DNA of 64,000 bases from Octopus sinensis (taxonomy: Eukaryota). The first letter of the stretch is position 1. Each line of letters starts with the position of its first letter. Below are positions 29,171 to 59,510 of the stretch, one piece after another. A program made the position numbers and the translations under genes. The notes under the pieces are model-generated. The model did not search any database and was not told the DNA's origin. It was given only the letters and a program-made list of their open reading frames with translations. The DNA lies in the NCBI RefSeq assembly GCF_006345805.1, contig NC_043024.1, forward strand, positions 2,790,001 to 2,854,000, read 5' to 3'.

Positions 29171-30673
29171 AATAAACTCAACCAAATTATGTATATCATA
29201 ATACTTAGAATGTAGCTCCTGAGAAACAGTGAAAGTAATTACTTGATCAACGATGGGTATTGCTGCTAGTCTATATATATAAAAGAGAGATTCTGTCTGT
29301 TTGTTTGTTTGTCCAGCAAAATGGAAGTAAATTGTTCAAAGGAAGTATTATTCTTTGTCTATATATATAAAATCGAAATTCCCTTTCTTTATTTCACCGG
29401 CAAAATGAAAGTACCTGTCTGCTATTGCCTAATTTGTCTCCCCTGCAATGGCCCATAATACTATTATGGATGGATAAAAGAGAGCTGAGAAGGGCTGGAA
29501 CATGGAAATGAACAGCTTATAAAGCTAAGCAAGGTGGAGTTAATCTTTTATCTCATACTCATTGGGTCTGTGAATTGTCTAGTTTGTGATTGGGTCAATA
29601 CAAGTCTTCGTTTTAGATGTTGGACATACAAAATGACAGAAGAATACTTAAAGTGTAATACAGCTTTATTTAGATTTCACATTATAAATATTCACAAAGG
29701 TTGATGAGGTTACCATTCAAGATTTTGGCCCTTACAAAGGTGATGACAAACAATTGTGGCAATTCACACAGAATATTACACGCTTCATTTATAATAAAAG
29801 GTTCCTCTTCTGTGTGTATACATTTGTGTCCAGTTAAATAATGATTTTTGAGAGACTTGGTCGAAAAGAAGAAGTCATGGTACAAGGATAACATTTTACA
29901 CCTTAGTTTTGATGTCAAATGTTTGATTTGATTGAAGTTTGCAACATTATCTACCATCTTTCCAGCAACTTTGGTCACTTTTTTGAAGTCCATACCTCAA
30001 CTAGCCATGGACAAACTTATAAAATTAAAAAAAGACAAAAACAGTGCAGCACCCATGGCTTTCAGAGATATTTTTTCATGTGCACAATTAGTGAAGCGGG
30101 GAATAAACTATACGTTGACTGCAACCTTCAAAACTTTCAGGTTTCCCCAAATACGTCATCACAACCCCTGATGTGCCTATGCTCTCTTTCCTCTTGGTGG
30201 TTCTATCCCTGCATGCATTTCTGGGGACATTTTGTGTTTTATTGTGTACAGTGCATCTACTTCAAGCTTTCACTGCTGTCTTTAGTTCACAACTATATGT
30301 CTTCTTTCTATTTCTTCATTTAACTTTTTCCAATGAGCACAGTATACAATAAACTTATTATCATAAGACAGAAGATGATTTGGGAGAATGATTTACTAGA
30401 GATAATATAGTGATGTAGTTTCTATGCTGGATGGATGCATTTATGGGAAATAGACTCCGCACTTTGAGAGAATGATTCTCCGCAGATATCACGTTGACTT
30501 TATTTTTCCTCTATATGGACGCATTTGTGATTAGATAAGTGAAGATTCTGAGGAAATGATCTGCCGCAGATATCACAGTGATATGGTTTCTCTCCTGTAT
30601 GAATACGTTTGTGACTAGTTAGGTTTTGATTCTGAGTGAATGATTCTCCACAGATATCACAGTGATATGGTTT

Positions 30674-32035
30674 CTATCCTGTATGAATACGTTTATGTCT
30701 GGTTACATCACTATTATGAGAGAAAGATTTACCACAAATATCACACTGATATGGTTTCTCACCTGTATGAATACGTTTATGTTTAGTCAAGCTACTACTA
30801 TGAGAGAAAGATTTACCACAGATATCACACTGATATGGTTTCTCCCCTGTATGAATACGTTTATGTGTAGTTACATGAATATCTTGAGAGAAAGATTTAC
30901 CACAAATATCACACTGATATGGTTTCTCCCCTGTATGAATACGTTTATGTGTAGTTATATCACTATTATGAGAGAAAGATTTACCACAAATATCACACTG
31001 ATATGGTTTCTCCGCTGTATGAATATGTTTATGTTTAGTTACATGACTATTATCAGAGAAAGATTTACCACAAATATCACACTGATATGGTTTCTCCCCT
31101 GTATGAATACGTTTATGTGTAGTTACATTACTATTACGAGAGAAAGATTTACCACAAATATCACACTGATATGGTTTCTCCCCTGTATGAATACGTTTAT
31201 GTGTAGTTACATCACTATTATTAGAGAAGGATTTACCACAAATATCACACTGATATGGTTTCTCACCTGTATGAACACGTTTATGTCTAGTTACATCACT
31301 AGTACGAGAGAAAGATTTACGACAAATATCACACTGATATGGTTTCTCTCCTGTATGAATACGTTTATGTTTATTTACATCACTATTATGAGAGAAGGAT
31401 TTACCACAAATATCACACTGATATGGTTTCTCACCTGTATGAATACGTTTGTGACTGGTTAAGTTTTGATTGTGAGAGAATGATTCTCCACATATATCAC
31501 ACTGATATGGTTTCTCTCCTGTATGAATACGATTGTGACTCGTTAGGTTTTGATTCTGAGAGAATGATTCTCCACAGATATCACACTGATATGGTTTCTT
31601 CCCTGTATGAATACCTTTATGTTTAGTTACATCACTATTACGAGAGAAAGATTTACCACAAATATCACACTGATATGGTTTCTCACCAATATGAATACGT
31701 TTATGTTTAGTTAAGCTACCGCTATGAGAGAAGGATTTCCCACAGATATCACACTTATATGGTTTCTCACCTGTATGAATACGTTTATGTTCAGTTACAT
31801 CACTATTACGAGAGAAAGATTTACCACAAATATCACACTGATATGGTGTTTCTCCTGTGTGAATGTATTTGTGAGTAGTTAAGTGGTGATTCTGAGTGAA
31901 TGATTCTCCACAGATATCACACTGATATGGTTTCTCTCCTGTATGAATACGTTTGTGATTAGTCAAACTAGATGTTTGAGAGAATGATTTGCCACAGATA
32001 TCACATTGATATGATTTCTTTCCTGTATAATACAT
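30674..32035 (-). CDS. C2H2 ZNF D1 (453 aa, 16 fingers), ending at an in-linker TAG
   Basis: MYYTG + 16 x 28 aa; two further in-frame fingers follow the TAG, down to TAA at 30502-30500. Confidence 0.85.
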   Translation of the reverse strand: MYYTGKKSYQCDICGKSFSQTSSLTNHKRIHTGEKPYQCDICGESFTQNHHLTTHKYIHTGETPYQCDICGKSFSRNSDVTEHKRIHTGEKPYKCDICGKSFSHSGSLTKHKRIHIGEKPYQCDICGKSFSRNSDVTKHKGIHTGKKPYQCDICGESFSQNQNLTSHNRIHTGEKPYQCDICGESFSHNQNLTSHKRIHTGEKPYQCDICGKSFSHNSDVNKHKRIHTGEKPYQCDICRKSFSRTSDVTRHKRVHTGEKPYQCDICGKSFSNNSDVTTHKRIHTGEKPYQCDICGKSFSRNSNVTTHKRIHTGEKPYQCDICGKSFSDNSHVTKHKHIHTAEKPYQCDICGKSFSHNSDITTHKRIHTGEKPYQCDICGKSFSQDIHVTTHKRIHTGEKPYQCDICGKSFSHSSSLTKHKRIHTGEKPYQCDICGKSFSHNSDVTRHKRIHTG

Positions 32036-32270
32036 TTGTAAACAGTTAAATGATGGATTTGCAAGAATGATTTACCACACGTATCACACTGATGGATATT
32101 TCTTTCCTGTATGAATAGGTTTCTAGGTCTTTAAGCTTCTACAGATATCACAGTGATAAAGGTGTTCCTCTGTATGAATATGCTTTCTCTGAGAGACTGA
32201 TATTTTTACAGATATTGCAGTCACATAATTTCCATCACTTATTTGACAACTCTTCAGGGAAAAAAAAAAT
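32036..32270 (-). pseudogene. Decayed N-terminal zinc fingers upstream of the D start codon (same in D2-D5)
   Basis: Fragments CNICK, KHIHTEE..YHCDIC, IHTGKK and [16 protein letters not shown] with shared stops and frameshifts. Confidence 0.8.
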
Positions 32271-56896: not shown

Positions 56897-57334
56897 CTAT
56901 CCTGTATGAATACGTTTATGTCTAGTTACATCACTAGTGTGAGAGAAAGATTTACCACAAATATCACACTGATATGGTTTCTCCCCTGTATGAATACGTT
57001 TATGTCTAGTTACATCACTAGTGTGAGAGAAAGATTTACCACAAATATCACACTGATATGGTTTCTCACCTGTATGAATACGTTTATGTTTAGTTACATT
57101 ACTATTATGAGAGAATGATTTACCACAAATATCACACTGATATGGTTTCTCACCTGTATGAATACGTTTATGTTTAGTTACATCACTATTACGAGAGAAA
57201 GATTTACCACAAATATCACACTGATATGGTTTCTCCCCTGTATGAATGTATTTGTGAGCAGTTAAGTGTTGATTTCGAGAGAATGATTTACCACAGATAT
57301 CACATTGATATGATTTCTTTCCTGTATAATACAT
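56897..57334 (-). CDS. C2H2 ZNF D4 (145 aa, 5 fingers); lacks its own acceptor and exon 1, possibly a pseudogene
   Basis: MYYTG + 5 x 28 aa; upstream homology breaks at ~57612 into the 3' flank of D5. Confidence 0.6.
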
Positions 57335-58232
57335 TTGTAAACAGTTAAATGATGGATTTGCAAGAATGATTTACCACACGTATCACACTGATGGATATTT
57401 CTTTCCTGTATGAATAGGTTTCCGGGTCTTTAAGCTTCTACAGATATCACAGTGATAAAGGTGTTCCTCTGTATGAATATGCTTTCTCTGAGACACTGAT
57501 ATTTTTACAGATATTGCAGTCACATAATTTCCATCACTTATTTGACAACTCTTCAGGGAAAAAAAAAAATCAATCCTTATCTTCTCTGCATCATGAAAAC
57601 TTCAATAATTTTATAATTGAAGTTTGCAAGATTATCTACCATCTTTCCAGCAACTTTGGTCACTTTTTTGAAGTCCATACCTCAACTAGCCATGGACATG
57701 CTTATAAAATTTAAAAAAAACAAAAACAGTGCAGCACCCATGGCTTTCAGAGATATTTTTTCATGTGCACAATTAGTGAAGCGGGGAATAAACTATACAT
57801 TGACTGAAACCATCAAAACTTTCAGGTTTCCCTAAATACGTCATCACTACCACTGATGTTCCTATGCTCTCTTTCCTCTTTGTGGTTCTATCCCTGCATG
57901 CATTTCTGGGGACATTTTGTGTTTTATTGTGTACAGTGCATCTACTTCAAGCTTTCACTGCTGTCTTTAGTTCACAACTATATGTCTCCTTTCTATTTCT
58001 TCATTCAACTTTTTCCAATGAGCACAGTTTACAATAAACTCATTATCATAAGACAGAAGATGATTTGGGAGAATGACTTACTAGAGATAATATAGTGATG
58101 TAGTTTCTATGCTGGATGAATGCATTTATGGGAAATTAACTTCGCACTTTGAGAGAATTATTCTCCGCAGATATCACGTTGACTTTATTTTTCCTCCATA
58201 TGGACGCATTTGTGATTAGATAAGTGATGATT

Positions 58233-59510
58233 CTATCCTGTATGAATACGTTTATGTCTAGTTACATCACTAGTGTGAGAGAAAGATTTACCACAAATAT
58301 CACACTGATATGGTTTCTCCCCTGTATGAATACGTTTATGTCTAGTTACATCACTAGTGTGAGAGAAAGATTTACCACAAATATCACACTGATATGGTTT
58401 CTCACCTGTATGAATACGTTTATGTTTAGTTACATCACTAGCACGAGAGAAAGATTTACGACAAATATCACACTGATATGGTTTCTCACCTGTATGAATA
58501 CGTTTATGTTTAGTTACATCACTATTATGAGAGAAGGATTTACCACAAATATCACACTGATATGGTTTCTCTCCCGTATGAATACGTTTATGTTTATTTA
58601 CATCACTATTATGAGAGAAGGATTTACCACAAATATCACACTGATATGGTTTCTCACCTGTATGAATACGTTTGTGACTGGTTAAGTTTTGATTCTGAGA
58701 GAATGATTCTCCACATATATCACACTGATATGGTTTCTCACCTGTATGAATACGTTTGTGACTGGTTAAGTTATGATTCTGAGAGAATGATTCTCCACAG
58801 ATATCACACTGATATGGTTTCTCCCCTGTATGAATACGTTTATGTTTAGTTACATCACTATTACGAGAGAAAGATTTACCACAAATATCACACTGATATG
58901 GTTTCTCACCTGTATGAATGTATTTGTGAGCAGTTAAGTGTTGATTTCGAGAGAATGATTCTCCACAGATATCACACTGATATGGTTTCTCCCCTGTATG
59001 AATACGTTTATGTTTAGTTACATCACTAGTACGAGAGAAAGATTTACGACAAATATCACACTGATATGGTTTCTCACCTGTATGAATACGTTTATGTTTA
59101 GTTACATCACTATTATTAGAGAAGGATATACCACAGATATCACACTGATATGGTTTCTCTCCCGTATGAATACGTTTATGTTTATTTAAATCACCATTAT
59201 GAGAGAAGGATTTACCACAAATATCACACTGATATGGTTTCTCACCTGTATGAATACGTTTGTGACTGGTTAAGTTTTGATTCTGAGAGAATGATTCTCC
59301 ACATATATCACACTGATATGGTTTCTCACCTGTATGAATACGTTTGTGACTGGTTAAGTTATGATTCTGAGAGAATGATTCTCCACAGATATCACACTGA
59401 TATGGTTTCTCCCCTGTATGAATGTATTTGTGAGCAGTTAAGTGTTGATTTCGTGAGAATGATTTACCACAGATATCACACTGATATGATTTCTTTCCTG
59501 TATAATACAT
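58233..59510 (-). CDS. C2H2 ZNF D5 (425 aa, 15 fingers), ending at an in-linker TAG
   Basis: MYYTG + 15 x 28 aa; acceptor at 60149, exon-1 donor at 62454. Confidence 0.85.

Follow-up and report, generated by a model that had tools for sequence, protein, structure and literature searches.

Young tandem zinc-finger arrays in an octopus genome: finger turnover and contrasting constraint on scaffold and DNA contacts

A 64-kb stretch of Octopus sinensis DNA (the window; CM016886.1 of GCA_006345805.1, about 2.790–2.854 Mb of a 20.3-Mb chromosome) contains eight arrays of C2H2 zinc fingers, namely those of the comparator genes A, B and C and five further arrays, D1 to D5, the flanks of which are only 1–6% diverged. 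D1 to D5 are probably Krueppel-type arrays specific to the octopus lineage that lie in a very young tandem cluster and either still are coding sequence under selection or were so until very recently. The anatomy of this cluster, its substitution rates and the selective contrast between finger scaffold and DNA contacts can be read directly from the copies. Octopus genomes are known for such genes; about 1,450 C2H2 proteins, with several octopus-only clades, were counted in O. bimaculoides (PMC12513265). The D cluster resembles the expansions described before (Albertin et al. 2015; Holzinger et al. 2025, PMC12513265), which consist of tandem multi-finger Krueppel-type clusters and octopus-specific duplication waves, and its arrays are likewise co-located with short and long interspersed element (SINE and LINE) repeats (PMC12513265). 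As a tandem, recently duplicated zinc-finger (ZNF) cluster in an octopus genome, it is a case of lineage-specific expansion. Those studies treated whole gene families; finger-by-finger turnover and selection on contact residues in very young paralogs are not described there, and a finger-resolved example of the known expansion in such paralogs is what is new here.

Tandem Repeats Finder (TRF) placed five minus-strand arrays with an 84-bp period where a previous reading of the sequence alone (the sequence-only reading) had put them, with tracts at 30471–32122, 38765–39691, 49427–50916, 56901–57421 and 58237–59597. In a fixed register of 28 codons the open reading frames (ORFs) of D1 to D5 contain 16, 10, 15, 5 and 15 fingers. 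These are the numbers given in that reading, and the zf-C2H2 stretches found by Pfam agree with them (16 in D1, 10 in D2); the arrays matched C2H2-type families only, zf-C2H2 together with zf-H2C2_2. The D1 ORF (453 aa; 30674–32035, on the minus strand like the other four) ends with a TAG in a linker (HTG*) and is followed by a remnant with two more intact-looking fingers (30500–30673, minus strand), including the family's terminal ...HKCVHIEEK*. D2 (287 aa; 38741–39604) runs to its natural end ...HKCVHMEEK* and is the only copy without a premature TAG. In D3 (425 aa; 49552–50829) the TAG precedes the terminal finger. D4 (56897–57334) and D5 (58233–59510) encode 145 and 425 aa, respectively.

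All 61 fingers follow the Krueppel-type pattern C-X2-C-X12-H-X3-H with TGEKP-like linkers, the 28-residue register is kept throughout, and every zinc ligand is intact (244 of 244, four in each finger). There are 39 distinct helices vs 27 distinct scaffolds, and 28 fingers have one identical scaffold. Variation is thus concentrated in the recognition helix while the scaffold is conserved, as had been noticed from the letters, and the seven helix strings quoted on that occasion were all found in the arrays. Two long antisense ORFs lie inside the arrays (30662–31462 and 58224–58685, both plus strand); we rejected them as genes, considering them a by-product of a repeat that has no stops in one antisense frame.

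Self-BLAST resolved tandem units of about 8–11 kb, each consisting, in plus-strand order, of the 3′ flank, the array, the 5′ flank and a 2.6-kb fragment of a non-LTR (long terminal repeat) retrotransposon. The D1 unit extends over 28675–36913 and comprises the 3′ flank, the array, the 5′ flank with interspersed repeats, and the LINE fragment; the D2 unit starts at about 36914, the rearranged D3 unit at about 46150, and the D5 unit reaches from 57616 to the end of the window. D4 occupies a partial unit (55947–57612). The fragment at the D1 unit boundary is a retrotransposon 3′ end (34293–36913, plus strand), other copies of which, with 93–95% identity, lie at 21199–23865, 44127–46132, 53107–55733 and 61954–64000, and it is a likely substrate for unequal recombination.

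Between units, the flanks are 94–99% identical (p = 0.010–0.061). Divergence amounts to 2.9–6.1% downstream (over 619 bp common to all five copies), to 1.0–2.9% in the proximal 766 bp upstream and to 3.4–3.9% over 2.2 kb upstream; transitions are about as frequent as transversions, and each 2.2-kb pair differs by 5–6 indel events. The distribution is patchy, with 0.4% to 9% divergence per segment along all flanks, for which reason the low divergence of the proximal 5′ flank was rejected as a sign of constraint. The sequence-only reading had described young paralogs with near-identical flanks and introns; youth and flanks are borne out by these values, whereas the introns are putative.

D4, however, is not a full paralog, which that reading had missed. 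Because the segment 56280–57421 is repeated at 57616–58757 (identity 92.8%), only 278 bp precede the ATG of D4 before the downstream flank of D5 begins. D4 is therefore a truncated partial duplicate. Compared with fingers 1, 8, 12, 14 and 15 of D5, its five fingers show 5 differences in 411 nt (four synonymous, one at helix position +3), and its array end is D5-like as well, with the TAG and a deletion of about 50 nt after it that is otherwise present in D5 only. By contrast, the 3′ flank beside the D4 array agrees with D2 at 13 of the 14 informative positions (55947–56898 compared with 37839–38790 and 57616–58234). Such a mosaic suggests that duplication units have recombined or undergone gene conversion with one another; with a D2-like flank next to a D5-like array end, exchange between units must have gone on. 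In the history that we propose, a unit of about 8–11 kb with array, flanks and retrotransposon fragment would have been copied by unequal recombination, exchange among the copies would have continued after duplication, and D4 would have arisen as a 1.3-kb partial duplicate beside D5.

Repetitive tandem regions are at times mishandled by long-read assemblers, and one or two real genes might mimic such a cluster if their haplotypes were mis-assembled or their repeats over-expanded. However, the unique flanks are 1–6% apart and each copy has private substitutions and indels, while array structures, unit lengths and inserted elements differ among the copies. We judge these differences to be beyond allelic divergence and unlike simple duplication artefacts, and consider an assembly artefact highly improbable.

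Finger-level alignment revealed that only the array ends are collinear between copies, whereas the interiors defy alignment position by position. The collinear end fingers are a first finger with QTSSLTN, a second of the QNQHLS type, in which HKYIH is unusual, and the QNHHLSN finger that terminates the array and in D1 and D3 sits 3′ of the premature stop; D4 and D5 start at the second-type finger. Across the interiors the same finger types recur in varying order and number, and the nearest relative of 34 of the 61 fingers lies in a different array. D3 contains block repeats with a 168-bp (two-finger) period, in which fingers 11–12 match fingers 13–14, and its fingers 7 and 9 are one synonymous base apart. 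D5 has an internal duplication of a block of six to seven fingers (offset 588 bp, corresponding to seven fingers; 90% identity). Both block duplications had been proposed in the sequence-only reading and are real, as is the rapid turnover of finger order and number (5–16 fingers, only the ends collinear). Genes A, B and C do not share the homogenisation of the D type, again as proposed: nucleotide identity within arrays is 58–69% in A, B and C vs 76–87% in D, and nearest-neighbour finger identity 74% vs 97%. Collinear ends around reshuffled interiors would be expected if an 84-bp coding repeat, anchored at its edges by unique flanks, underwent slippage or exchanged unequally. The repeat would misalign during recombination or replication, so that fingers or whole blocks are gained, lost and reshuffled, and the anchored end fingers would stay.

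For substitution rates, an all-against-all comparison of non-synonymous and synonymous changes (dN/dS) among the 61 fingers gave 0.57 for contact and 0.11 for scaffold positions. It was rejected, being saturated by old finger classes and failing to separate D from A, B and C, and was therefore replaced by counts along a minimum-spanning tree (MST) of the 55 distinct fingers and by pairs of orthologous fingers. In the MST, synonymous changes per synonymous site were 5.8 in the helix vs 5.9 in the scaffold. Reciprocal-best orthologous fingers from different arrays had a pooled synonymous divergence of 0.046, which equals that of the flanks. Mean pairwise finger identity is 81% at the nucleotide level, with several old finger classes side by side. 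The notion of a homogenised scaffold and a hypervariable helix is thus valid for the protein and fails for the DNA: there is neither scaffold-specific DNA homogenisation nor hypermutation of the helix, and the input of mutations is uniform and ordinary. Therefore, the contrast between scaffold and helix is produced by selection. Point substitutions would come at the ordinary neutral rate, and selection would purge most changes in the scaffold while it tolerates, and may mildly favour, changes of the helix contacts, especially at +6.

On MST edges with at most five differences, and with kappa = 2 as taken from the flanks, the scaffold accumulated 28 non-synonymous changes vs 94 expected (omega 0.30, P ~1e-15); scaffold omega values are ~0.2–0.3. 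Non-contact positions of the helix had an omega of 0.86. At the contact positions −1, 2, 3 and 6, we counted 32 non-synonymous changes vs 22 expected (omega 1.45, P = 0.027). The ratio of non-synonymous to synonymous changes was 32:3 at contact codons vs 28:35 in the scaffold (Fisher p = 3e-6), a contrast that is robust. It is also visible in non-redundant groups of orthologous fingers across copies, in which every change post-dates the duplication of the units. Here the scaffold ratio is 10:11 (P = 0.005 against a neutral fraction of 0.76) and the contact ratio 8:1, with six of the eight changes at +6. Furthermore, no stop-creating substitution was observed on recent edges, where 4–10 were expected, and no frameshift was found in about 5.1 kb of array. 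With 61 fingers free of stops and frameshifts, the arrays thus appear to have been under selection after duplicating.

A number of features weigh against this conclusion. Directly upstream of every D ORF lie three dead fingers, one of them internally deleted, in which frameshifts and in-frame stops have accumulated; they occupy 216 nt in D1 (32036–32251, minus strand) and the same 216-nt block in the other copies (39605–39820, 50830–51045, 57335–57550 and 59511–59726). In the finger just before the ORF, a His has changed to Tyr and the second His codon has lost 1 nt; it is this deletion that shifts the frame and creates the ATG of the ORF (AAATGT), which begins with MYYTGKK. The premature TAG is common to D1, D3, D4 and D5; it replaces the Glu codon of a linker and cuts off one or two intact-looking fingers. 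Both the shared 5′ decay and the TAG had been missed in the sequence-only reading. D4, moreover, is without the upstream region present in the other copies. The newest, private scaffold variants number 14 non-synonymous to 7 synonymous, indistinguishable from the neutral expectation, and among the normally conserved positions that they hit are the TGEKP linker and the first residue, an aromatic one. The MST counts represent no true phylogeny, and old variation that has already been filtered can re-enter them when finger types recombine. A Pfam scan of the three gene-strand frames of the 5′ flank DNA (X placed at each stop, E ≤ 0.1) found no domain, be it KRAB, SET, SCAN, BTB or other, in the 2.26 kb covered; the scan ends there, and exons beyond the LINE fragment are outside its reach. 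Finally, exact look-ups on the assembly found a called gene for A and C but for none of the five ATG-to-stop products of the D arrays. Close relatives of D1 and D2 were not found in a large protein database either (best matches at most 61% identical, the results being swamped by generic vertebrate ZNFs), but since the called gene A is missing from this collection too, and the proteome of the species as a whole seems to be, this says little about annotation.

These features could mean that the D arrays are dead or dying pseudogenes, the ancestor of which lost its 5′ fingers and start and left a remnant that was passively amplified. Open frames would then persist only on account of the short age of the copies, and what looks like selection would be inherited from a functional ancestor. 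Such a history would account for the upstream stops and frameshifts common to all copies, the frameshift-born ATG, the TAG common to four copies and the post-TAG deletion common to D4 and D5, and also for the nearly neutral private scaffold variants, the uncalled ORFs and the truncation of D4. Yet the orthologous fingers, which show synonymous divergence equal to that of the flanks, diverged after the shared lesions and nevertheless have a scaffold ratio of 10:11 (P = 0.005). The lack of stops and frameshifts in 61 fingers and the intact state of all zinc ligands likewise speak against decay. Hence, we regard pseudogenes as unlikely and prefer coding arrays on which selection acts or acted until very recently.

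How the contact residues evolve is a separate question. In an arms race like that of PRDM9 or KRAB zinc-finger proteins (KZFPs), recurrent positive selection at contacts would act together with minisatellite instability and re-target the proteins so that they track active transposons. The contact ratio of 32:3 in recently diverged fingers fits this, as do an omega of 1.45 (P = 0.027) that rises to 1.65, ratios of 2–4 for the helix when compared with its own few synonymous changes, repeated changes of +6 between orthologous fingers, the fast turnover of finger content, and the enrichment of predicted octopus ZNF motifs in transposable elements (TEs) reported elsewhere (PMC10547256). However, over all settings for edge cut-off and kappa the contact omega ranges from 0.97 to 1.65 with P from 0.005 to 0.6, and from 1.3 to 1.95 in orthologous finger pairs; other reasonable settings give ~1.0–1.3, which fits a lack of constraint. 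The repeats, with 81% mean identity, are not near-identical, no effector domain was found in the flank scanned, and the naive (GCG)n target is absent from the local TEs. A non-synonymous excess at contact residues, which the sequence-only reading had made a check of its idea, is thus not plainly lacking (32:3), yet it is modest and compatible with relaxed constraint as well as with positive selection. Overall, we consider such an arms race possible, if doubtful. Whether tolerated or favoured, changes at the contacts combined with the reshuffling of fingers imply that the predicted DNA target drifts fast between copies.

In PRDM9, the repeats hardly differ except at three codons, omega is very high and alleles are polymorphic in length. 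The D arrays resemble them as an 84-bp coding repeat within one exon that shows repeat-number change of the unequal-exchange type and variability at DNA-contact codons. They differ in a mean repeat identity of only 81%, the presence of several finger classes, synonymous differences throughout the unit and an omega of ~1–1.6, and no PR/SET, KRAB or SSXRD domain was found for them by Pfam in the 2.26-kb 5′ flank. Near-identical repeats with hardly any difference beyond the contact codons are therefore not what the D arrays consist of, and the PRDM9-like dynamics claimed earlier were overstated in degree, given that old classes coexist and synonymous change is unit-wide; the statement that there is neither SET nor KRAB agrees with the scan on the gene strand.

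With mammalian KRAB-ZNF clusters the D cluster shares tandem duplication, gain and loss of fingers and a conserved scaffold with TGEKP linker (Emerson & Thomas 2009, as cited in PMC10547256). These clusters also show raised non-synonymous change at −1, 2, 3 and 6, and an arms race with TEs was proposed for them (as cited in PMC10547256). Unlike them, the D copies have no KRAB or other effector in the 2.26 kb upstream, their ORF starts in a dead finger, and their excess at contacts is borderline; the domains that define KRAB-ZFPs and PRDM9 are not found with the D arrays. Mechanistically, the D locus behaves as a KRAB-ZFP cluster does, by tandem duplication, gain and loss of fingers, and relaxed or positively selected contacts. 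The FiNZ-ZNFs of cyprinid fish (Wells et al. 2023, PMC10547256) are, like the D arrays, a poly-ZNF family outside the KRAB clade. They are large, young and lineage-specific, were proposed to repress TEs and show positive selection in some clades (PMC10547256). Unlike the D copies, FiNZ genes possess a defining N-terminal domain and are backed by expression and knock-down evidence (PMC10547256).

A more specific scenario is that expressed, effector-less array-only proteins starting at the frameshift-born ATG would be re-aimed at young octopus transposons while sequences diverge by just a few percent, through unequal exchange in the 84-bp repeats and positive selection at +6, −1, 2 and 3, with an array length that varies between individuals. 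We hold this to be a tentative idea with more to be said against it than for it. If true, re-targeting by arrays alone would mean that invertebrates have, independently of KRAB, a counterpart of the mode of evolution of KZFPs and PRDM9. To our knowledge, there is no KRAB in the invertebrate lineage to which octopus belongs.

We infer that the D products may be expressed DNA-binding proteins and may target transposons. Under a naive recognition code, the abundant xNSDVTK fingers would be expected to read GCG-rich triplets. A search for (GCG)4 with up to two mismatches found no match in the window, which is weak evidence, since a code of this kind is crude and the targets may lie elsewhere. Predicted motifs of octopus ZNF ORFs were found to be enriched in TE consensus sequences by Wells et al. 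2023, who tested for positive selection in zebrafish FiNZ genes only (PMC10547256); a 2026 essay names the octopus species of that analysis as O. sinensis (PMC12988792). That ZNFs target TEs in octopus, a lineage without KRAB, is thus a hypothesis already published, and the corresponding proposal of the sequence-only reading restates it. The essay further states that the C2H2 expansion of octopus coincided in time with a burst of repeats (PMC12988792), and whether an arms race with transposons lies behind the cephalopod expansion was called 'now an open question' by Holzinger et al. 2025 (PMC12513265).

Cephalopods have one of the largest zinc-finger expansions outside vertebrates, and the locus is a compact natural experiment on the arms-race question: four and a half copies, a few percent apart, with different finger sets and with older paralogs as controls. 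If expressed, the D copies would be a place to measure how fast DNA-binding specificity changes and whether young repeats are the targets in a KRAB-less invertebrate lineage, and also by what means a finger array that lacks a known effector domain might act. If silent, they would show how dead arrays keep open frames and mimic selection.

Turning to the comparator genes, gene A is an older paralog with 12 fingers (8750–9859, plus strand), the ORF of which is a called gene on GCA_006345805.1 CM016886.1, and gene C (13927–15240, plus strand) is also a called gene product on the assembly. Gene B has a finger ORF of 332 aa (18909–19907, minus strand), yet it is called on the assembly as a 576-aa product (18909–20904, minus strand). 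Four tandem 184-bp SINE-like copies with open frames lie directly upstream of gene B (19987–20682), and since they adjoin it, the 576-aa model probably reads through these repeat copies. TRF detected the older arrays at 8843–9815 and 18888–19834. A motif seemingly shared by a 59-codon ORF of B and the N-terminus of C had no support in tblastn and is only apparent.

An element of ~115 nt is located about 320–435 nt upstream of the ORF in D1 (32354–32471, minus strand), D2, D3 and D5 and is absent from D4. It recurs in the older genes A (8614–8735, plus strand) and B (20714–20830, minus strand) with roughly three-quarters identity by eye. No reading frame common to its copies was found. The element may be a common promoter, 5′ untranslated region or first exon of a ZNF subfamily. 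In D1, a poly-T tract with AG at 32252–32269 (minus strand) is a candidate splice acceptor; ACAG|GA, immediately 5′ of finger 1, is another.

The window as a whole is AT-rich (GC content 35–42%) and rich in interspersed and tandem repeats; an Rfam search found nothing. The downstream flanks of D1, D2 and D4 have a conserved ORF of 134 codons in common (29919–30323, 38160–38564 and 56268–56672, plus strand). By eye it resembles an ORF at 2091–2474, itself similar in appearance to a C-terminal tail from a retrotransposon ORF; Pfam matched neither of the two. Between the LINE fragment at the unit boundary and the D1 unit sits a minus-strand non-LTR retrotransposon (region 24023–27608) with an endonuclease ORF (26946–27608) and a reverse transcriptase ORF with a PHD-like finger (25497–26831), which is adjoined by a GC-rich 61-bp tandem array (24023–24786). 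Two near-perfect tandem arrays, at 7529–8097 (42 bp × 13.5 copies) and 15594–16276 (51 bp × 13.4 copies), have the common core TGAGGCCCAAT..TCAAA.GG. Each of them adjoins the same interspersed repeat of about 560 bp, which is found in the D 5′ flanks as well, and the two arrays probably represent a variable internal minisatellite of one TE family.

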